64,000 nucleotides of DNA from Pelomyxa schiedti (lineage: Eukaryota; Protista; Evosea): the NCBI GenBank assembly GCA_020536535.1, contig JAHLWZ010000076.1:1-64000 (forward strand), written 5' to 3'. The notes under the pieces are model-generated. The model was not told where the DNA came from, searched no databases, and worked only from the letters and a program-made list of their open reading frames with translations. Both the position numbers and the translations under genes were made by a program. Shown piece after piece: positions 1 to 12,087 of the stretch; positions within the stretch are counted from its first letter, which is position 1, and each line of letters starts with the position of its first letter.

Positions 1-8
1 AGACAGAG

Positions 9-59
9 AACAAGTTTGCCACATGGAGCACCTTCCCTTGAAAGTCGTAGCACACCCAC
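9..59. repeat. 51-bp exact direct copy of 5940-5990 (interior of the 583-aa ORF)
   Basis: AACAAGTTTGCCACATGGAGCACCTTCCCTTGAAAGTCGTAGCACACCCAC is identical at both sites, and the flanks differ immediately on both sides. Confidence 0.95.
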
Positions 60-299
60 AAAAATATTGTTTTCAAAAAAAATTTTGAAGCTTTTGGTGG
101 CGTGCCCACACACCCAACCAGGGGTAATCCTACACAGAGATTATACAGCCCAAAGAAACAGGAGAGGTAGTACCGTCCCCTTGTTAGCTTCTGTGGGAAG
201 AGAATAAAGCCCCACAGGGGAAAAAGAATGAAAGAGAGTGTGAGTGTAAAGGTTCTCTTGCTTGTTCACGTGCTTGGGTTGCACGTGTTCAAAGGATAA

Positions 300-1780
300 T
301 TAATTTGGTGCGGTTAGGTGCTGTTAGCTTCGAAGCCACGCTGTTGTCCAATTCTCAGTCAAGATTACCTTAGAATCAATCACCGCTGCAGTCCGCATTA
401 GTGCGTTCTATGTCTCATAAGATCGTCGCTGCCTTGTTCCAGTAATTCCGTCATTGGATCTCGAGAGTCGGGATTCGTACAGAGTCCGCAGAGTGTCCAT
501 AGAGCTAAAGCTCGTGTACTTGCTAAAGTACACACCCTGAGCTACAAGATCCAAAGTAAGGACTTGGAGTAACTAGCGTGACACCTTGGCTTCCTGAAAA
601 CTGGTTTTGTAATATTAATGTAAGCCACTCCTCCACCAAAAGCAGCTCCTTACAACAATAACTCATGGTGAGTTATTGTCGCACCCAGCCCTGTCAAGAT
701 TCTTCGCTCCTAATAATAGATAGTGAAAAATATCGTCACCTTAAATCGCCTCTGAGTGTTGAGTGTTGAGTTATACCCACTTCCTTCACCGAGGTTTCTG
801 GTTCACTCTCTTTGTTTGAGTAGTGCAAGCAAGATCTATAACAATAATAAACAGCTACAAAACTCCTCGTCAAAATAAAAGAACTATGAGTCTAACACTC
901 AGAAAGTGAGCATACACACCCCCCCGGTTCGGCCATTGGAGCTCCTCAGGCCAAAACAAAAAAAAAAAAAAAAAAGATTGATGTCGCATGAAGCAAACGG
1001 TCCAGCAGAGTAGTTTTGAACCTGTTGTGAAAACAAAAACAACGTGTTCTGCTCTGGATGTATCCATTAGCAATGAATTGCACATTTGAGGAATCAGGTG
1101 CTCCCGATTGAGGATTTGTTGTTTACGCAACAAGCGGCAACGCCTCACACAGACCAACGCCAACAAGACTTGTGTTTGTTGAAAGGGTTTTGATGTCACC
1201 GAACTTGCAGAGCTCTGATTCTTGGGCCTTTTAAGAAAGATCTGAGAGGAAGTGTTGACCTAATCCAAAACTCGCCCATGTGTAAAGTACCGGGGGGGGG
1301 GTCCTGGTTTTATGAAGGCTTGGGCAGAATGAAATGATCTGTGGTCGTTCGAAGGAAGAAGATCTTGTGTGCAGCGAAACAAGTGAACGCCGGCGTATTT
1401 TTTCGGGAAATCAAAATCACGCAAAGTATCCCAACTGTGTGTTATGCCTGACGCTATGGCTGCTGCTGTGTGTAAAAAAAATAAAAATTTAAGGTGGATT
1501 CACAATGGGGGGAAAAACCCAAGGCACGCTCCCGTTGGTTGCAGGATTTGATTGTAGTTGTCAGTTGCTTGCGAGTATCAGCCGACAGAAAGGGAACCGT
1601 GACGCGACACCACAACCAATTGGTGGCGTCGCAGTCCAGTGTCATCAACCGAGGCATACTCACTCAGAGCAATACTCACCACAAAGGGGCTGAGGGGACG
1701 GACCACTCAGGTCGGTGTCCCGGATCCCACGATTACTAGACAGCAGGAGGCCTGGCCTCGTTCCCTCGCACCACCTCCAT
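300..1780 (-). CDS. Multi-exon hypothetical protein
   Basis: Hand splicing (introns 1736-1690 and others) gives MEVVRGNEARPPAVYPFVVSIALSEY...FFPPFWDTLRDFDFPKKYAGVHLFRCTQDLL...LQVLTLDLVAQGVYFSKYTSF. Family not recognised; the stop could be at 408 or 300. Confidence 0.45.
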
Positions 1781-1866
1781 CGCCACCACAACCGGCGGCA
1801 CCGCGGTCCGCGGCGCTCGGAGCCGGCATTTGATTGTCGGAAATCACCATCACTCTTCGTCATCAA

Positions 1867-1906
1867 CTTCTTCTTCATCTTCATCTTCATCTTCTTCTTC
1901 TTCTTC
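1867..1906. repeat. (TTC/ATC)n microsatellite
   Basis: cttcttcttcatcttcatcttcatcttcttcttcttcttc, between two divergent genes. Confidence 0.85.
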
Positions 1907-2078
1907 AGCGTGAGACCTGGAGGATTCGGAGCGTGTTGTGTCTCTCGGGAGTGCGGTGCCATGATCCCATCCGCGATCATCACTGACTAGAAGCAGTTCC
2001 CACTGTGTTGCCATTCACACAATGAAGTACTACTGCAAAAGGAACGTCGAGTAGAGAGGCCACCCCAGGGAGGTACCT

Positions 2079-4648
2079 ATGTCGGAACGAGAGTGCCTCC
2101 TATTTAAAGGTGCAATTCCCGTTCAGATCGGACCAGGAAAAGGCCCGCGAAAAAGAGAAAACAAACTAGACAATATGAACCGAGGACCACCAGCTCGCAG
2201 GGAGAAAATCGTTCTCTCCCTTCCGCCTCCGCCAATTGCCAGCGACGCGGAAGTACTCCCCTATGTAAGTTTCAGTTATCGTCGTTTTTACAGCGGGCAG
2301 CAACCAACTGCTCACATCACACACTTTCCTCCTCACAGTTGCCGGGAAGTGCCCTTCATAGAGTTACAGTTCCCAATGGCGTTTCTGGAGAAGTTCAAGT
2401 GAGTGGCACAATTTCTTTCGCCCACCGTTCCAACAACAAATCAATCAACTCTCATATAGGTAGTAAAACCTTGGGGATGGCTTTTCTATGAAGGAAAGAA
2501 GCACTCCAAACCACTGATAGGTGTGATTTGATTCTTTGTGTGCCTGCCACCAACAATTTCTTTTTTTTCCTTTTTTTTTTTCCCTTCAAATAAGAATCGG
2601 AAGTGCGGGAGAACTACCAATTCATCTTGCAAAGAGAAAGGATCACAGGGGAAATCCATGGAGATGGGGATGAATTGGAATCACGGGTTTGGCTAACGTA
2701 TGTCTTTTTTTTCTGGTTACCTTTGAGTCTCATCAGTAAGTAACTTGTCCCTTCCTTCAGAGCTCAAGTGGAGATGACTGTGGAAGAGCAACAACTTATT
2801 GCAGGTCACTCTGTTTATCTAAACCATGGCAGCAGCATTACTATCGGCAGTGAATGTATGTGTATAAAATTGTATCTCACTAAGATTCCTTTCCTTTTTT
2901 TTTTTTTCTTTAACCCCAAAGAAAGGCATCCGTTTCTACTGGCATGATGAGTGCAATAAAACAGGAGTATTTGAGGACCAGAGTAACCACGAGCCCAAGC
3001 AATACCGGATTTTGTGGAGACAAGGCAAACTCGGAAGGTGGGGTCTTATTCTTCAAGTCGACTTATGTGTCCTTTCTTTGACTTGGGCTTTTTTTTAGTG
3101 GTGAGTTATCTTCAGTGTGGCCTACTTTGTGCAGTGATGGTCGCCGAGTTGCAACCAAGGTACATTTACATTGGGATTGCTCTCAACCGATCACCATAGA
3201 GAATGACTTACCAACAACAACAACACCAACAACGGACAGGTTGTTTCCCTGAATAAATTCAACAGCCGCCAAGAATTGATCGGGGACAGCAACCTTAAGT
3301 ACGACAATGAGACCACGTTCCTCAGCAGGTTGGGAAACCCCACTCGAAAAAACACACGTGCACCACAGAGTCACACAAAAGAAGAAGCCTTCAAATAAAT
3401 AACACCCGGATATGTAATTATTATAGATTGAAAGAATGTGAGTTCTTTCCAACATTGCTTTTCTCCTACGAGAAGAACGAGGAGCCCTTCTATTACATTG
3501 TTACAGAAATGTAAGCTTTATGTTAGCTTTTATCTCAAAGAATACACTAACAACAAAAACAACCAATTCAGGATCGAAGGCAGAAGCATCAAACAGATGC
3601 TTGACAGCAATGTAAGATTCAGTGAGGTGACGATTGTGGGTATCATCAAGGATGTGCTTCAGGCCCTATGTCATCTGGAGAAAGAGAAGATTATCCACCG
3701 GGACGTTACTGTGAGTCTTCCATCTTTCTCTCTGTGTGTGTTTTAGCGCCACAGCCAACTCACCAATTCCAGGCGGCAAACATTATGATTAGAGGGTGGC
3801 CGAACGAACCTCGGGCAGTGTTGATTGACTTCGGCATTTCGTTGCAGCACCCAACTCAGAGCGCCTTCTTCTGCTATGGGACCCCAGGCTTCGTCGCACC
3901 TGAAGTCATTGATGCAGGTCGCGGCATCTTCTCGAGTGATGGTTTCACCAAAATTGATGTCTGGGGCGTGGGGAGTACCATGTATTACATGTACGTATAA
4001 TGCCTCCCACACTCCACTACACACACACACGAAAGCAAATCAAAAACGCAACAAACAATGAGACCAATAGTAACGCTATAATTCCAAGGTTCACTGGGAG
4101 AACTCTGCCCCCAGGGCCCCTGTACGTCAGAGCCCCAGAGCTGGCGGGAGTGAGCCCTCCTGGTAACTACTGTTCTCTATCTTTTCCTTGCGTGTGTTCA
4201 CCCAAAGAATATAAAAGGGATTGCGGTTCTGAGCTATCTCCTGCGAGTTGACCCCGAGACAAGGCCCACAGCGAGGGCACTCTTGGACACTGCCTACATG
4301 CTCTTCGACCCCCCGGTTGGCAGCCCCTTCTGTGATGCAAGGGACCTTGATCAATTCCCTTTCCGCAACACCACTCCAACAATGACAACCATGACGAGAA
4401 TGACGATGACCATTGCCAGCAGCCTGGTGCCCACAGTGACAAGGAAGCTCAGCAGCGCCATAGGGGTTCTCATGCTGAGGCCCGTGTCATCCCTGCTCCA
4501 AGTGGTAGCGCGCAGGAGGAGGCACCTCAAGAAGGCTCATCCTGAACAACAAGAACCGGCAACCCCAGGTGAACCAAGAAAGAGGAGCAATGAAAGAACG
4601 ACGCCCACACCAAATACTGAAGATGCAAAGAGGAGGCGTGTTGGTTGA
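2079..4648 (+). CDS. Ser/Thr protein kinase with a possible degenerate FHA-like N-terminal region
   Basis: Spliced motifs: RRVATK, IIHRDVT|AANIM, LIDFG, YGTPGFVAPE, KIDVWGVG, LLRVDPETRPTA. The N-terminal LNHGSSITIG resembles an FHA C-terminus. Start codon uncertain. Confidence 0.85.
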
Positions 4649-4785
4649 ATGTGTAACTTGTGCTGTTCCCCCCCAGTGCTGTGTGGTGGTGGGGGAAAAA
4701 ACAACAACAAAACCCAACACACCAACTCTTCTTGCGAACAACAACAAAAAGACAAAGACAAAACAACCACGCGTGCTCTGTTCTT

Positions 4786-4884
4786 GGAACCCATAATTGC
4801 AACGGAGGCCGATTTTTTTACCCAGAAAAAGAGCGAAAGAGGGGGAACAATCGGGTTCGGGCGCGCTTGTTCAGCCGTGAGGTT
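4786..4884 (-). repeat. Left copy (A) of a 99-bp inverted repeat
   Basis: Its reverse complement matches 8960-9058 at 89/99 without gaps, including a perfect 32-bp block (4853-4884 vs 8960-8991). Confidence 0.95.
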
Positions 4885-5197
4885 GAGCAACACACGCAAA
4901 ATGCGTAAGTCTAGGGGGTCCTTCATCGGATCTTGCCGGGGCTACCGAACTTGTTTTTTTTTTTTTTGTTGGTGCTCACTCCTGCTCTTGGGGTCCATTT
5001 GTTTCATTGATGTGCTTTGCTTCAATTTCGACAAGGCACACACAACCCTTTACGGAACTCCCCTGAGTAGTTTTGTTTTTGTGGAACAAACCGATATCAA
5101 AGCCTTGGCCACCAGGTGTGTGAACGAACCATTCATTCAGAGGTTCTCTGTTTGTGTTTGTGGTCAACCACTGAACCACAGCGGGATGGTGTGGTGA

Positions 5198-6949
5198 TCA
5201 GACCACTTGGGTGATGGTGAGCTTCCAGGCGTGGTCTAAGGTCACAAAACAGACGGGAAAGCAGGTCTCGGCGCATCTCACCTCGATGGAGTTGTCCCCC
5301 CTGCGGACCTTGAAAAGGAAGCCGGCTTCTGCAAACACAGTGGTGAGTGGCTCCAAAGGGAGGAAGCACGTGATTTCCTTCAGTCGGTGCGGTGTTGGTT
5401 CCTCCACAGCTCCTCCTTCTCCTCCTCCTCCTCCAACAGTGAACCCCCATATCTCATATCTATCTTGCTTGGAGATGCAAAAGCGGTGGCAGTCAACTTG
5501 CGCGAGCGCAGTCACATCACTGGACAGCTGCCTGCATTCTGATGAACTGGTGGTTCTGGCTTCCACAACATGGAACAGGTCTCCTCCAGTCACGAGGTCG
5601 GCGTACTTTGTTCTCAAGATGATGAAGCTGTCGTTGGTGCAGCTTCTTGTTCTCTGTCTGCTATTCCCGTAGGGGGAGCCGAGGCCGGAGATTAAGAGGC
5701 TGGAGCCATAGGCTTGGCCTGCTGGTATCTGACAACACGTTTGGCGGGCAATGACGGAGGATCCCTGATGGAAGCTCTGCTCGACGTCGATCACAAAGAT
5801 GCAGAGTTTGCCGCTCAATTCCCCGCGCTCCACGCAAAGCACCGCCTCATTTCTGTTCATCTTGCTCAAGTACATGAACGCGCCCGTGTGCTCTGGAACG
5901 TCGATGTCGCCTGAAGGGCAGCGCGCGTATCTCCTCTCCAACAAGTTTGCCACATGGAGCACCTTCCCTTGAAAGTCGTAGCACACCCACCACGCGTGAT
6001 TGGCAGCGTAGCGAGTGTAAGAATGGGTGCTTGGGAGCAGGATTTCCTTCCTTCCGGTCATCACGTCGACCAACGAGAACCGCGCGCACAAGTGACCAAG
6101 AAGCTCCTTCTTTACGAAGCAGATGTTGGATTGGCCAGCAAAAGCAGCATTGCGGCACTGCATGTGCTTGACAGAGATTTCGCGTGGCTCGACGGACACG
6201 CCCAGAGTGAGCGGGGAAATGCCAAAGTGGAACACACGGAACTTTGGGGCGGTGACACACACAGCAAAGAACAGGTCGGACTCGGCAATCACCCGGCGCA
6301 GGTTGGCGGGCAGGCCGTCGTGCCGCCACATGAGCGCCGCTGCGCTGCGCGCCCCGCACGTCGGGTGCGACGCGCACGCGAAGGCCAGCAGCTGCTCGGC
6401 CAGGCTCAGCTCGACTTTGTGCGTGGTCTCGGTGGGCGCGTCGATCTTGATCTTGTCCGGCGCCTTGACGTTGGTGCGGACCCACCGGCCGTGCTGGCGC
6501 CGCTTCGGCGCCAGCTTGCGCTTGGCCACCCTGGCGGACGAGGCGGCGCCGGGGGGGACGACCAGCGCGGTGGTGGCCACCCGCGGCCTCTTGGGGCTGC
6601 GCCACAGATGAAAGGGCGCGTCGGTGCGCTTCAGCGGGCCGAGCGGTGGCGGCGGCGGCGGCACGACCACGAATGCGGTGCCGTCGCCTGTGCGCAGTGG
6701 CGGGGTCGTGGTTGTGTTGCCTCTGTCCTCGCCGCCGTGCGCGGCGGCGGCGGCCGCTCCCACGGTCGTCGTTGATGGCCGCGTAGGTGCGTCGTGATAC
6801 ATGTTGTTCGTGTTATTGGCACCTCCTTCTCCTCCAGAGGGGCACCCTCGGTGGCCCGCGTCGTCGTCTTCTTTCGAGGGGAACAGGCCCATCCCAGCGG
6901 TATTTTTCTTTTTTGAACAACAACAACAAACACGATTTACGGAACCCAT
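5198..6949 (-). CDS. Intronless 583-aa lineage-specific protein (possible cargo gene)
   Basis: Long open frame with a GC-rich 5' half. ATG at 6949 gives MGSVNRVCCCCSKKK; an alternative ATG is at 6892. Motif EQLLAFACASHPTCGARSAA...FGISPLTLGVS; beta-rich C-terminus. Confidence 0.8.
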   Translation of the reverse strand: MGSVNRVCCCCSKKKNTAGMGLFPSKEDDDAGHRGCPSGGEGGANNTNNMYHDAPTRPSTTTVGAAAAAAHGGEDRGNTTTTPPLRTGDGTAFVVVPPPPPPLGPLKRTDAPFHLWRSPKRPRVATTALVVPPGAASSARVAKRKLAPKRRQHGRWVRTNVKAPDKIKIDAPTETTHKVELSLAEQLLAFACASHPTCGARSAAALMWRHDGLPANLRRVIAESDLFFAVCVTAPKFRVFHFGISPLTLGVSVEPREISVKHMQCRNAAFAGQSNICFVKKELLGHLCARFSLVDVMTGRKEILLPSTHSYTRYAANHAWWVCYDFQGKVLHVANLLERRYARCPSGDIDVPEHTGAFMYLSKMNRNEAVLCVERGELSGKLCIFVIDVEQSFHQGSSVIARQTCCQIPAGQAYGSSLLISGLGSPYGNSRQRTRSCTNDSFIILRTKYADLVTGGDLFHVVEARTTSSSECRQLSSDVTALAQVDCHRFCISKQDRYEIWGFTVGGGGGEGGAVEEPTPHRLKEITCFLPLEPLTTVFAEAGFLFKVRRGDNSIEVRCAETCFPVCFVTLDHAWKLTITQVV

Positions 6950-6995
6950 AATTGAAAGATAGACCGAATGTGTTGCCCTGAAAAAGAGCGAAAGA
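6941..6995 (-). repeat. Diverged third copy (B) of the repeat, same orientation as A
   Basis: 45/55 ungapped identity to 4786-4840. The downstream GTCTAGGG is also shared (7067 vs 4909). Confidence 0.85.
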
Positions 6996-7329
6996 AAAAC
7001 CACCCTCAGATTGTGGTGAGGGTTCAGTTATTGGACCCAGGTGCACGTCGGCACCGGTCTAGGGTTCGCCCGGGGCCTCCTATCAGTTTTTGTGTTTCTT
7101 CGGGTTTTTCCTTTTTGCTCTGGGTTCCTCAAGGAGGTGAGAGTTGGGATGCAGTACCAGTGATGGTGATGTTGTTGTTGGGGAAATGTACCTCCCCATT
7201 CTCTGGTGGGGTGTGGTTCACTTCCCTCCACTGGATCCAGTGCACTGGGCATCAGTCCAGGAGGAATAATCCACATGATTTGGAAAACAACCAGGAAGGC
7301 ACAGGGGTTTTGTGGGAACCGACACCACC

Positions 7330-8880
7330 CCCAACAACAGAGGCACTTGTGCTTATGAACTGCACACAAGTGCCCTTTCTACATACATAATAGGTTGGTT
7401 GTCTGAAAACCAATGAATTTCTTTTGTCAAAGGGCGTTTCATGTGAAGAGACACAGTTTTAGTTTGTTTGGCCAAAAAAAAAAGCATCCTGTTGTGCTAG
7501 GCTACTAGCCTTTGAGTGGTTGAGACAAAAGCCTTGATGGAGGAGGATTGGGGTCTCAAGGTGGAGCTGATGTCATATTTCATGATGAGAATATCCCTGT
7601 TTGTAAACTCCTAGCAGGTTGTCTTAGCTTCAATTTTGATGTAAGCCTAAAGCTTCAGATACAATTCTTAGTCTAACTGGAAGCAATGAGGTGGAAGTGC
7701 TGCAAAAAGACTTAGATCAATGTGAGCTTCCTGCAAACAGGGCATATTCTGTGTGATTGGTGATAACTGTAGTGTTGTGCATGGGGACCACACTGGTGCT
7801 ATACAGCTGTTCACAGAGACAATACACACTCATTCCTACTGGTTGCTGGCTTCATGTTCTCAATCTTGACCTTGTCAATGAACTTGATAAACTTTTGGAG
7901 AACATCCAACAACTCAGGTCAACCAAGACATCAACTTTCAGCTTCTTCTTGTACTCTTGCTGGTATTTATCCCAAAGCAAGTAACTCCAAGGTCTGAAAA
8001 GTTTCTTTTACTGAGTTTTGTAAAGAAAACAAAATTGAGGTCAAGTTACCTTCATGCTCAGACACCTGGACATTGACCGATCCCTGATTTCAAAGCCATA
8101 CACCAACCTGTTCTCACAAGGTGGAAAACTGTGATTGAGGCAAATGCTTGGTAGAGCATTGGCTCCCTAGATCCACAAACAAAGAAACCATTCTGTACTA
8201 ATTATGAGCCTCTTCACGAATTGTGCCCAGGGCAGCTGCTCATTGGTCATATGACCAGCTGAAAGCAGCTGAAAAAAAGCTGTTGTTTCATTTTTGTGTC
8301 ACTGAAGAGCAGAGTTTATTTTCTTTGTTGATAGTCTTGCTTCCAGAGATTACCCTTGTGGAATTCCAATTTCCCCACCAAAACTGTTCCTCTGTGTTGG
8401 TACCATGTGGCATTTCAACAAGGAGTGGACTGTGGTGACCCTGAGGAAATCTGCTCAATGCTGCCTGTGATTTTGTTTTGGCATACCTGTTTGTGGCACC
8501 AGTGCACACAACTGTGACAGTTTACACTCCTGGCTGTGCTTTGTTGAAATGTTCCCCACTCTCTTTACATTCTCAAGCTAGAATTCGTCACTCAACTGGC
8601 ACTTACTTGTTGCTTATCATTGTGGAATGCAAATTGTGTGTGCACATGTGTTGAATTCCCCACCTGCACAGCAAGCAGACAAGGAGGTGACTAAGATGCA
8701 GATACTTTCAGCAGAAGCAATGTGGGAGCTGTAAGACCACTCCACATAGAAGCTCATGTTGCAACGAAATAGCCAGCATCAGGAGCAACATCTTTGTAAC
8801 TTGCTACTGGCACATTGGGACACACATGGCACTGCTTCTCTTCCCCTCCTCACTGTGTGATTCAGTAGAACAGAAGCACA
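7330..8880 (+). mobile_element. Decayed hAT-superfamily transposase relic with stops and frameshifts
   Basis: Ordered hAT-like motifs across frames: SLDG (7530-7541), CVIGDNCS (7750-7773), GCWLHVLNL (CxxH, 7841-7867), PVLTRWKT (8107-8130), LAHWDTH...LPLL (start of dimerisation domain, about 8810-8850). The catalytic E (ERxFS) was not found. Confidence 0.7.
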
Positions 8881-8959
8881 CATCACTCCTTTTTTTTTTT
8901 TTTTAATACCCATAATCCATTCCCTAACTTGACAATCATTTGGTTAATGCTTCTGCATT

Positions 8960-9058
8960 AACCTCACGGCTGAACAAGCGCGCCCGAACCCAATCGCCCC
9001 TCCACTTTCACTCTTTTTCTGGGTACAAAATTCGGCCTTCGTTGCAATTATGGGTTCC
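8960..9058 (+). repeat. Right copy (C) of the 99-bp inverted repeat, 90 bp upstream of the MKT1 ATG
   Basis: Reverse-complement match to 4786-4884 (89/99). Confidence 0.95.
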
Positions 9059-9147
9059 GAAAGAACTTTGTTTTTTTCCCTTCGCACCGCTCGTTACTTT
9101 GTGTCAAACACGCTGGTTGGCTACCAAACGAGAGATAGTGTGCACAG

Positions 9148-12087
9148 ATGCCGCACGTGCCTACGCTTGACGAGTACATGAGACGCAGTGGTGCGTGGGC
9201 CCGGTGCGCCAAGGAAGGCCAGCCGCTCGCGGGGCTGCGCGGTGCCGTGGTCGCCATCGACGGTGGCCACTGGTTCCACAGCAGGTACGAGCCCGCTGAC
9301 GACCCATTCAGGTGCCAAGTCGCCGGGGTGCGTGTTGCTAATGCCCCTGCTATCTATTACACGACACTACTCTTTTTTTTTTTTNNNNNNNNNNNNNNNN
9401 NNNNNNNNNNNNNNNNNNNNNNNNNNNNNNNNNNNNNNNNNNNNNNNNNNNNNNNNNNNNNNNNNNNNNNNNNNNNNNNNNNNNTCGGTGGCGCCGGGGG
9501 GGTGTGTCGAGCTGCAATTATGGGCCTGGGTGTTATGTTAGCCCTTGGTTGGGTTTATGTATTTTCTACCCCTGAAAACAAAAATATAGGTGCCAGGGCC
9601 ACTGGTGGTATCACTATTACGGGATATTGACGGTTTCTCAGAAGCGGGAATTAAACCATTTGTGGTCTTCAATGGGCTTAATGTTCCTGCTCCTTTGCTG
9701 CAGCCACATCACCACTCTGAAAAAATACACAACAACAAGTACTTTATGGCTTGGGAGGCTCAAAGAAAAGGTGACAATAAGGCAGCAATATCCTTTTTGC
9801 AAAAGAATTTCAAGGTTCCTGTGTACACCCAAGTTGGTCACACCAAACACTTACTCCCCTACCACAACAACAGTACGCGTTATCACAGAACGTTTTGCAA
9901 GGACTTCTATGTCTCCTCACAAAAAAGAAAGTCGAGTGGATCCGTGCTCCATTTCTTGCTCTGGCTCAACTTGCTTGGATCACCTCAGCAACCCCACCTT
10001 CCGCGACACATATCTGGGCCTCTCCAGAATGCTTCATGTTCCCACAAACAACTTCAATAATTCTCGACATAAACTTTCAGGTGAGAGCTTTGCTAATTCT
10101 TGTTGCCGTTGTAATTGGCGCTCACGTCCCATATAGAATCACACTTACACAACCTTGGACCAATCAGCCCTTTTTCATGAGTTGCTCGTTACTCAAGAGC
10201 AATTCACTGATGCTTGTCTCATAACTACCTATGTAGAGCAAGTGTACCCTCAATACCCCAAACGCAGAAATTTCGGAGATACTCTGAATTTTGTTAAGTC
10301 CACACCAAATATCATGCAAGGTATGGTGTGATGCATCTCAATAATATTTTCCAACTTCCGCAAGCTCTTAGGTCAAGGACCCCAGAAAGTGCAGCTGTTC
10401 TTCGTACAGCACGCTCTATGATTCAACACCACATGATTTTCAACTATTCATGTGTGCGTAACTTTTCGTTCCTCTGCTGGTTTTTTGTTAACCACTCCGC
10501 AGGTCTGTGAGCCTATAAGTGGAAATCCACCTGCTAACATCGATGGTATATTTGGTCCAAGACTGCCTGACCAGGCGTTCTTTTTTATTTGTATGGGTGT
10601 GATATCACCACAAGTGTTGAACAATATCATTAGCGCGACTCTAGTGGAAACTTCACCATTGGTGGACTCAACAGGCATGGAATTTCTCACTTAGACATAG
10701 TGGGGATAACATCTAAAAAGAGTACCGGGGAATGTTATCGGATCTTGTTGACGTCAGAGCCAATACCTTTTCTACTGTCTGTGCAACTATGAACCCGGCT
10801 TTTCGGTCTAGGTCCATCTTGTGGCAGCACTATTGGGAGGACACCAATCCACAAGATCTGCAGATAAGGGCAGGACCCGAGCTCTCTTCTATTAAACTGT
10901 ATTTGTAACCTTGTTATATAAATAGTAACTCCAAACCCAGGCTGGCGAATGACGAGGAGATTGAAGTAGAACTAAAACGGCAGGGAACTACGCATGTCGA
11001 TATGTGCTTTGTTCTATCAACGCGGGCACAGCACAGTCTTCCTGGCACTAACCAGTCAATACCACTGAATAGTCCACTTCCAGAGCGAGGCCCGGAGCCG
11101 TTTCGAAGTACAAAGAGCTACCTCTCCAGCGCTCTCCTTCACAGCTTGATAAGTACTATATCAATCACAGCACTGTGAATAAACTTACACCCAAAGGCAT
11201 GGAAAATATATCCCCAGAGGGAAGTTTGACTCCTCTCGGAGATGTCTTGAATGAAGTTTTGCTAAAGAAAGGTGGCCACATGTTTCAAGAGCAATGCTTA
11301 ATTGCTCTTGAGCTTTTACGTGCAGGGTATGTCATTGCGTTGCAAACACTTTGGCTGATACAAATTGAAAGTTACTTAACGTCTATGCCTTTGAACTACA
11401 TACCACCCAGTGACACTGACAATACCTCAAATCACGCTCGCCTTTCCTCGCGAGTTTTCAGTCTTCTTCCAGCGCAATTAGAGGTAAGGTTCCATCCACC
11501 ACATTCTTCTCTTTATTTATCTCCCTTTGGCCAGTAATAACTCATCCCAAATGCAGCCCAAACCGTGGAATCAAGTTGACCACGACCTTGCCGGATTCCA
11601 CAGTGTAGTTACAGCCTTATGGAGGTCACTGAGGAACCTTCACGAGATTGTTGCACTGACTCTGTTCCTTCAGTACCAAGTGGAATTACCCCCGCAGGCT
11701 TACCGCGAATTTTCCTCACAGTAAGCCGGCTTTTACCTATATCCCGACCCTTTCCAAATTTATCACACCTGATTGTGAATTTACAGGCTTCCATTTTTCC
11801 AACAACCAGGCACGGAATTGGGAATTGTGTGCAAGCACATCATGGAAGACACATCAGACAACATCACCCTCGAATCCCTGCTCGCCACGTTCCCGGCCTT
11901 TGGAACCACCCAACAGATAGCCCAGCAACTGAATGATGGGTGGCTTTTCTGGTGCTCTGTGATGAGCATTGCGGAAACTCTGGCCAAAAACGGTGTCCTT
12001 ACACCTCAACAGTGGACAGATTTTGAGCAGACCAACACAGTCCTTTTTTCCAAGTGGTCATCAATCCCTGGCCTCCAGGCTGAATAG
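9148..12087 (+). CDS. MKT1: MKT1-like post-transcriptional regulator (XPG-N/PIN-like N-terminus plus MKT1 domains)
   Basis: LRGAVVAIDGGHWF, DDPFRCQVAG|VPG, GIKPFVVFNGLNVP, FGPRLPD, GMGVISPQVLN, IALELLRAG. Multi-exon; intron 1 contains the N gap. Confidence 0.8.
9385..9484. other. Scaffold gap (100 N)
   Basis: Run of exactly 100 N after a poly-T tract. Confidence 0.99.

Follow-up and report, generated by a model that had tools for sequence, protein, structure and literature searches.

The 64,000-nt stretch of Pelomyxa schiedti DNA analysed here (scaffold C76:1–64000, hereafter the window) carries, 5–9 kb from the scaffold end, a cassette bounded by 99-bp inverted repeats that encloses an open reading frame (ORF) and the relic of a transposon. 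An earlier note had interpreted the cassette either as a composite or pack-type hAT element mobilising a gene, or as inverted duplications of the promoter of the adjacent MKT1-like gene created by alternative transposition. Our analysis suggested that the repeats are probably U6-type promoters of a predicted small-RNA gene of ca. 100 nt, embedded in a patchwork of duplicated DNA, and that the cassette is not a mobile unit. The observation underlying the earlier note, namely the inverted repeats, a third repeat copy and no target-site duplication (TSD), was confirmed, and its interpretation as a whole was partly supported. The repeat copies and the RNA gene predicted from them are as follows.

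4786–4884, forward strand: arm A, comprising the predicted promoter (CCCATAA at 4790–4796, T-run at 4813–4819, A-rich box at 4824–4831) and the first 30 nt of the predicted RNA body
4855–4967, forward strand: predicted small RNA of type 1, ca. 100 nt, with three internal hairpins and a T14 terminator at 4954–4967
6921–7001, forward strand: copy B indel of ca. 80 bp, which contains the repeat at 6941–6995 and comprises the predicted promoter part only
8960–9058, reverse strand: arm C, comprising the predicted promoter (CCCATAA at 9054–9048) and 30 nt of the predicted RNA body, cut at 8960

Arms A and C are inverted with respect to each other and identical at 89 of 99 positions without gaps, and the similarity ends sharply on either side. 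Copy B is more diverged, with 82% identity across 55 nt. The 64-kb window contains exactly three occurrences of the 14-mer GGAACCCATAATTG, compared with 0.5 expected. Direct repeats of 5–10 nt were absent from all 22 × 23 boundary combinations of the A–C and B–C pairs, i.e., no TSD was found at any tested boundary. The genome-wide search that had been proposed as a check on the pack-type interpretation (52,367,397 bases, 5,337 scaffolds) returned only nine copies of the 99-mer, mostly unpaired, all of which open around ACCCATAA. The homology continues inward past 99 bp in several copies, and the alignment of arm A with contig C2050 spans 4781–5107.

The outer part of the repeat opens GGA-ACCCATAA-TTG and matches the DUSE motif of Dictyostelium, [AT]CCCA[AT]AA, which lies ca. 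63 bp upstream of many non-coding RNA genes, including all spliceosomal RNA genes (PMC3188802; PMC7919456). In arm A, ACCCATAA is located at 4789–4796, and position 4855 marks the beginning of the conserved RNA block and of its terminal stem. Counting 65 nt from the CCCATAA at 4790 leads to this position, which is the first base of the block common to both sequence types of the element and also the first base of GUUCGG. A comparable arrangement was found at the U6 genes of P. schiedti, as CCCATAA[TG] was present 64–66 nt upstream in 19 of the 21 U6 matches in the genome, versus zero matches for a reversed-pattern control. In the listed U6 upstream sequences, a T-run begins 23 nt after the start of the box and an A-rich box occupies −32 to −25; arm A carries GATTTTTTTACCCAGAAAAAG at the same offsets. 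The resulting three-part pattern, CCCATAA-N14-18-TTTT-N4-10-AAAAG, had 33 genomic matches compared with 5 for the control, including seven U6 genes and six repeat copies, and none of the 33 was on a contig with a U2 gene found in the genome. On this sequence evidence, the repeats are predicted to be external promoters of a small-RNA gene with a layout like that of the U6 promoters of the same genome, and their sharp outer edge is the upstream edge of this promoter and not a transposon terminus. Given the T-run terminator and the lack of three-part matches on U2 contigs, we infer that RNA polymerase III is the likely enzyme. About 20 of the three-part matches are neither U6 genes nor repeat copies and are candidates for further RNA polymerase III-type small-RNA genes (e.g., C55:2111, C55:4309, C455:107787, C455:120376, C842:16839, C862:16823 and C626:19209).

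For the 103-nt RNA, the predicted fold consists of three hairpins and a terminal stem, which is formed by GUUCGG (4855–4860) and CCGAAC (4945–4950), the latter directly before the T14 run. The folding z-scores were −2.9 (type 1) and −3.2 (type 2) for the sense strand versus −1.0 and −0.4 for the antisense strands, which fold no better than shuffled sequences. A covariance model of the inner element (4855–4970) identified 19 genomic copies on nine contigs. These copies belong to two sequence types, 76% identical to each other, both of which keep the same hairpins and end in a T-run, and standard pairs occupied 98.8% of the cells. The element copies are near-invariant across loci, whereas the DNA between paired copies is only ca. 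50–60% alike. ARAGORN detected no tRNA in the module. Copy A is predicted to be a complete small-RNA gene. The TAGGG pentamers that had been regarded as hAT-like termini are present as described, although they are not termini: the one at 4912 is part of the small-RNA element's conserved core, and neither of the other two is related to the RNA, that at 7070 belonging to sequence common to two paralogous contigs (C1369 and C1880) that have no repeat there.

Several points weigh against this interpretation. The promoter of copy A contains a T7 run. In the type 2 copies, whose conservation is the highest, a canonical CCCATAA at −65 is lacking and GGAACCCGGGTTCC is found instead at a variable distance. 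Of the nine promoter copies, five are truncated or have no RNA body. Compensatory change of both partners was seen for only a single base pair, so the pair counts give little independent support; moreover, the RNA structure was derived from the same sequences as those used for the counts. The element matches no Rfam family: apart from chance-level rows, searches of Rfam 15 yielded no match over 4300–9400 (E up to 1) or C1384:3200–4200 (E up to 10), and in 117 kb nothing reached the gathering score. The ca. 100-nt RNA is itself a prediction, and we infer its expression. Finally, the long-range arrangement rests on contigs from seven whole-genome-amplified cells.

The type 2 copies occur as inverted pairs 60–120 bp apart at five loci:

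C1384:3237–4141: type 2 inverted pair
C1650:2209–2565: type 2 inverted pair
C993:3700–4007: type 2 inverted pair
C289:91–422: type 2 inverted pair
C1816:2458–2767: type 2 inverted pair

The paired copies are near-invariant and the centre is variable around GGAACC(C)GGGTTCC; the type 2 copies often form such pairs around a GGAACCCGGGTTCC centre. On C1384, the pair is extended to a palindrome of ca. 900 bp with two full promoter-plus-RNA units. A reading of the type 2 pairs as miniature inverted-repeat transposable elements was unsupported, as their ends fade into A/T runs without a visible TSD and the C1384 palindrome extends further. A Helitron-like end, with CTAG following a hairpin, was also rejected because all copies stay homologous beyond CTAG.

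The protein genes and other sequences surrounding the repeats in the window are as follows.

3438–4648, forward strand: protein kinase gene to the left (3′ exons), converging on copy A; the open frame ends at 4648
5198–6949, reverse strand: ORF Pelo_946, intronless, 583 amino acids from the ATG at 6949, with the probable start at Met20 (6892, MGLFPSK)
7123–7521, no strand assigned: single-copy sequence with a CpG observed/expected ratio of 0.09 and no genomic match elsewhere
7522–8405, forward strand: three internal transposon pieces, hAT-like by motif order, with 48 genomic matches
8390–8654, forward strand: frameshifted FHA-gene pseudogene fragment, identified by tblastn against an ORF of C1369
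9148–12045, forward strand: MKT1-like gene, with MKT1_C (PF12246) at 11211–12045 (E = 1e-12)

All three predicted promoters point inward, such that copies B and C stand back to back with the starts of the ORF and MKT1, respectively. Copy B lies 49 bp from the probable start of the ORF and is directed away from it; arm C lies 90 bp from the MKT1 start codon and is directed away from MKT1, into a CpG-poor block. Arm A is located between the 3′ ends of two convergent protein genes, the kinase gene and the ORF.

Comparisons with paralogous contigs showed that the duplication blocks ignore the arms. Contig C1369 (7.2 kb) has counterparts of arm A, of the ORF (identical at 90.5% in DNA) and of portions of the relic, including some of the FHA fragment, with no arm C within 1 kb of its expected place. 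Contig C1880 carries the ORF, followed by 920 bp of different sequence and then by arm C and the MKT1 5′ end at 94–96% identity. The homology on C1880 thus crosses arm C into MKT1, and the supposed end of the cassette is not respected. The copy B indel (6921–7001) is absent from both contigs, which are collinear with the window on either side of it. C1369 was taken as support for the order A–ORF–B and C1880 for the order ORF–B…C–MKT1; these orders, together with the 10% divergence between the arms, argue against an amplification chimera. Among other members of the two families enclosed by the arms, ca. 40 other transposon copies have no arm, and the other ORF paralogues have no repeat upstream. 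Of the 5′ part of the small RNA kept in arm C, 27 nt are missing from C1880 (C1880 ca. 2500–2510 versus window 8960–8990), and GGTT on both sides of this gap suggests that it arose by microhomology deletion. The C1880 copy of the ORF carries a stop codon as well as internal deletions.

In the scenario that we propose, the region near the scaffold end would be a patchwork of recent, partly inverted segmental duplications, and the repeated module in it would be a small-RNA gene. Its promoter, with a CCCATAA box at −65, a T-run at ca. −43 and an A-rich box at ca. −30, would drive a structured RNA of ca. 100 nt with pairing 5′ and 3′ ends, followed by a T-run terminator. Arm A would represent the complete gene, arm C the promoter with 30 nt of the RNA, and copy B a promoter-only fragment of ca. 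80 bp. As a guess, promoter fragments might have been copied by ectopic repair or gene conversion.

The sequence between copies B and C differs strongly in CpG content from its surroundings. The earlier note had stated that the repeats keep their CpGs and that the transposase has lost them, and this contrast was borne out: the observed/expected ratio was 1.1–1.2 in the arms and 0.98 in the ORF, versus 0.05–0.09 across 7123–8959 and 0.69 in the whole window. The stretch 7102–8966 contains six CpGs in 1,865 bp (observed/expected 0.07). TpG and CpA are in excess in the CpG-poor block (1.58 and 1.56), as expected from the deamination of methylated CpG, and other copies of the transposon had CpG ratios of 0.14–0.21. 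These values suggest methylation-driven CpG decay of silenced DNA in P. schiedti. The CpG-poor block is bracketed by copies B and C, although this may merely reflect the different origin of the block.

The region of this block that had been read as a hAT transposase relic (7105–8960) is composite. Transposon pieces are present at 7522–8405, collinear with copies on C791, C317 and C496, and their hAT identity is unproven. Both termini and ca. 2.9 kb of the 4.0-kb element are gone from the pieces in the window. The termini of the family are TGGGGGTCAAA[TC][AC]AACTC, and three insertions have perfect 5-bp TSDs (AAATT, AAAAT and ACATT). Neither TGGGGGTCAAA terminus is present within 4000–9400. The full 4.0-kb form was found on C791 (positions 4114–8113 of C791:153000–162999), along with many deletion derivatives of 1.2–2 kb, and a related intact open frame of 828 amino acids is present at C222:4899–5687. 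Blocks of the transposase, read by eye from P0012, P0013 and the relic translations, follow the hAT order (FDTS, IIGDNCAG, GCWLHVLNLAL, P.TRW and TTERVEGVF), for which the signature blocks of the RNase-H-like DDE core are DxxD.., C..H.LNL, TRW and ER.FS. A profile search of the genome for the hAT C-terminal dimerisation domain (PF05699) gave no match in the window or C791, and hmmscan of the fuller copies, P0012 and P0013 reported none of the hAT families with E allowed up to 10. A large HMMER search with the transposase returned nine matches, none with a hAT domain; tblastn with the PF05699-bearing ORFs of the genome, the ESM Atlas and a word search provided no support for hAT identity. The transposase had no sequence match to a solved structure, and its AlphaFold2 model (pLDDT 43) was too poor for a fold search. 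The relic family is therefore described here as probably hAT-like. The 5-bp TSDs, as opposed to the 8 bp of other hAT elements, agree with the hAT5 group and also with Transib-like elements.

The fragment at 8390–8654 adjoins the transposon pieces and aligned with the C1369 ORF at 57% over 77 amino acids with a change of frame (tblastn, E = 1e-20). It belongs to a gene family whose products carry an FHA domain (PF00498, E down to 2.9e-5) preceded by a hydrophobic stretch, and members of this family adjoin small-RNA modules on several small contigs:

C1384:2324–2957, reverse strand: FHA-family gene
C1384:5909–6469, forward strand: FHA-family gene
C1369:1318–2370, reverse strand: FHA-family gene

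PF00498 was detected in the C1384 and C1369 homologues, and the FHA domain is apparently split by an intron after L[KD]C. A role of the repeats as promoters of this family was rejected because the orientations are inconsistent among C1384, C1650 and the window.

The ORF inside the cassette is open over 5198–6949 on the reverse strand, as had been reported, and its product is 100% identical to the hypothetical protein Pelo_946 of P. schiedti. The start of the 583-amino-acid frame was less well founded. Because close paralogues begin MGL[FW]xS (MGLFQSK, MGLWHSS and MGLWQST), the start is probably Met20 (6892). The MGLFPSK start would give a myristoylation-like N-terminus, and the ATG inside the repeat is probably only an upstream in-frame ATG. 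The possibility that the ATGGGTTCC end of the repeat supplies the start codon or a 5′ module of the family was rejected, as the paralogues start MGL[FW]xS without a repeat upstream. The family has at least 64 matches in the genome, mostly single open frames of 400–550 amino acids, which is unusual in a genome with 7.43 introns per gene (PMC8887013). Pfam gave no match to the ORF, and a word search with it found P. schiedti proteins only. An AlphaFold2 model based on 18 paralogues (pLDDT 72, pTM 0.72) showed N-terminal helices followed by a seven-bladed beta-propeller, and its best structural matches were WD40 and G-beta proteins (E ~1e-7). The ORF belongs to an intronless, lineage-specific family of predicted beta-propellers. 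In the annotated protein Pelo_2551, a fragment of this family is fused to a reverse-transcriptase domain (PF00078); here the gene model has probably joined a pseudogene to a retroelement.

On the left, the kinase gene was recognised by Pkinase (PF00069) on the ORF pieces 3668–4000 (E = 5.7e-8) and 3438–3746 (E = 1e-4). On the right, the MKT1_C locus on C76 is the sole one in the genome; the MKT1 exons were searched separately, and C1880 carries a duplicate of the MKT1 5′ end (96% identity). The assembly was produced with SPAdes --sc from seven single cells after whole-genome amplification and was scaffolded with RNA reads (PMC8887013). No Ns are present in 1–9384. The MKT1-like gene is interrupted by a 100-N scaffold gap at 9385–9484, 240 bp past its start codon and 330 bp beyond arm C on the right; because this gap was bridged by RNA-based scaffolding, the cassette is connected only indirectly to the remainder of MKT1. 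In addition, window positions 10–57 are a 48-bp exact copy of ORF positions 5941–5988 in the same orientation, followed by divergence; the copy represents either what remains of a further member of the family or an assembler k-mer overlap.

Other explanations for the repeats were weighed against the small-RNA promoters proposed here. A composite or pack-type transposon, with the arms as terminal inverted repeats mobilising the ORF and a dead transposase, is highly improbable. A 90% identical inverted pair does enclose a gene and a transposon relic, and some features of the repeat recur on contigs with ORF paralogues or relic-like pieces. However, such an element is contradicted by the lack of a TSD at any boundary and by the ends of the relic family, which differ from the repeats and are both absent here. 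Other copies of the transposon and other ORF paralogues are repeat-free, the nine repeat copies are mostly unpaired, and no second copy bounded by both arms was found. The homology of the paralogous contigs either stops short of the arms or passes through them, as C1369 has no right arm and that of C1880 continues through it. It is less improbable, although still unlikely, that the repeats are duplicated RNA polymerase II promoter or 5′ untranslated region modules of MKT1 and the ORF, with the ATGGGTTCC end facing the genes. Copies B and C do lie 49 and 90 bp upstream of plausible starts with their ATG-bearing end toward the gene, the CpG-rich repeat stands beside CpG-poor DNA, and copy C still adjoins MKT1 on C1880. 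Nevertheless, no gene is present on that side of copy A, which faces the 3′ end of the kinase gene, or of the four other full copies, and the C1369 and C1880 paralogues keep the gene start without copy B. All conserved sub-elements are located at U6-promoter offsets for the opposite direction. Nothing connects the repeats to alternative transposition, for which transposon termini are lacking, as the relic is without both of its ends. The earlier model of a duplicated MKT1 promoter was thus right in regarding the repeats as promoters, with a good CpG argument, and wrong about the gene driven and the origin of the copies.

A functionless low-copy repeat, consisting of duplicated DNA in decay or of a family of dead small-RNA pseudogenes, is perhaps the least improbable of these explanations, although we consider it doubtful. 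Many copies are truncated or rearranged, the covariation evidence is thin and no known RNA family matches, all of which would fit this explanation. Decay alone would be difficult to reconcile with near-invariant element arms around dissimilar intervening DNA, a folding advantage on one strand only, CpGs kept beside strongly decayed DNA and promoter offsets conserved to the nucleotide. An assembly or amplification artefact, such as a multiple-displacement chimera or a SPAdes mis-join, is very unlikely. The origin of the assembly from amplified single cells, the N gap close to arm C and the exact copy of an ORF segment with which the contig opens would be in line with an artefact. Amplification chimeras, in contrast, give identical arms, and those observed here differ at 10 of 99 positions; the sequence up to the gap contains no Ns, and the two paralogous contigs independently support the arrangement on either side of the ORF.

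A further idea, which we regard as unlikely, is that promoter-only copies of the module are placed beside protein-gene starts without their RNA body, where they act as chromatin barriers in the style of RNA polymerase III/TFIIIC, and that the full copies constitute a new class of ca. 100-nt paired-end RNA. If true, copies B and C would bracket 1.9 kb of CpG-decayed, presumably methylated debris (7102–8966) and shield the two adjacent promoters. The location of promoter-only copies at protein-gene starts and at the edges of the CpG-decayed block raises the question of a boundary function and of cytosine methylation in this organism.

Our results remove a claimed gene-capturing hAT cassette and provide a testable replacement, i.e., an uncatalogued multi-copy family of predicted small-RNA genes behind a U6-type promoter in an archamoeba. 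With the three-part promoter pattern, candidates for RNA polymerase III genes of P. schiedti can also be listed easily. The cassette resembles Pack-MULEs and hAT-derived gene carriers in the placement of inverted repeats around a host-like gene and the remnant of a transposase; it differs from them in having no TSD, repeats unrelated to the transposon termini, no further bounded copies and duplication blocks that disregard the repeats. The relic family shares 5-bp TSDs and the order of hAT blocks with hAT5, a group with TSDs of this length on record (Kapitonov and Jurka 2007, as cited in PMC12730594). Unlike hAT5, it has no Pfam hAT-dimerisation match and its termini start with TGGGGG, and its membership would depend on motifs read by eye. 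The predicted small-RNA gene is similar to the U6 genes of P. schiedti in the box 64–66 nt upstream, the T-run 23 nt after the box start, the A-rich box at −32 to −25 and the terminator. In contrast to U6, the element has neither ACAGAGA nor AGC and matches neither RF00026 nor RF00619; its similarity to the U6 3′ half is presumably confined to a short ACACGCAAA..CGT.AAG stretch. The Class I RNAs of Dictyostelium are 42–65 nt in length, whereas the Pelomyxa element is ca. 100 nt with three internal hairpins; it lacks the Class I bulge motif CCTTACAGCCAA (PMC3188802), and its host is an archamoeba and not a dictyostelid. Both are multi-copy amoebozoan families with a DUSE ca. 60–63 nt from the start, a short terminal stem and a downstream T-run (PMC7919456; PMC3188802). 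The presence of a DUSE-like box at the same distance in Pelomyxa as in social amoebae indicates an old amoebozoan promoter design.

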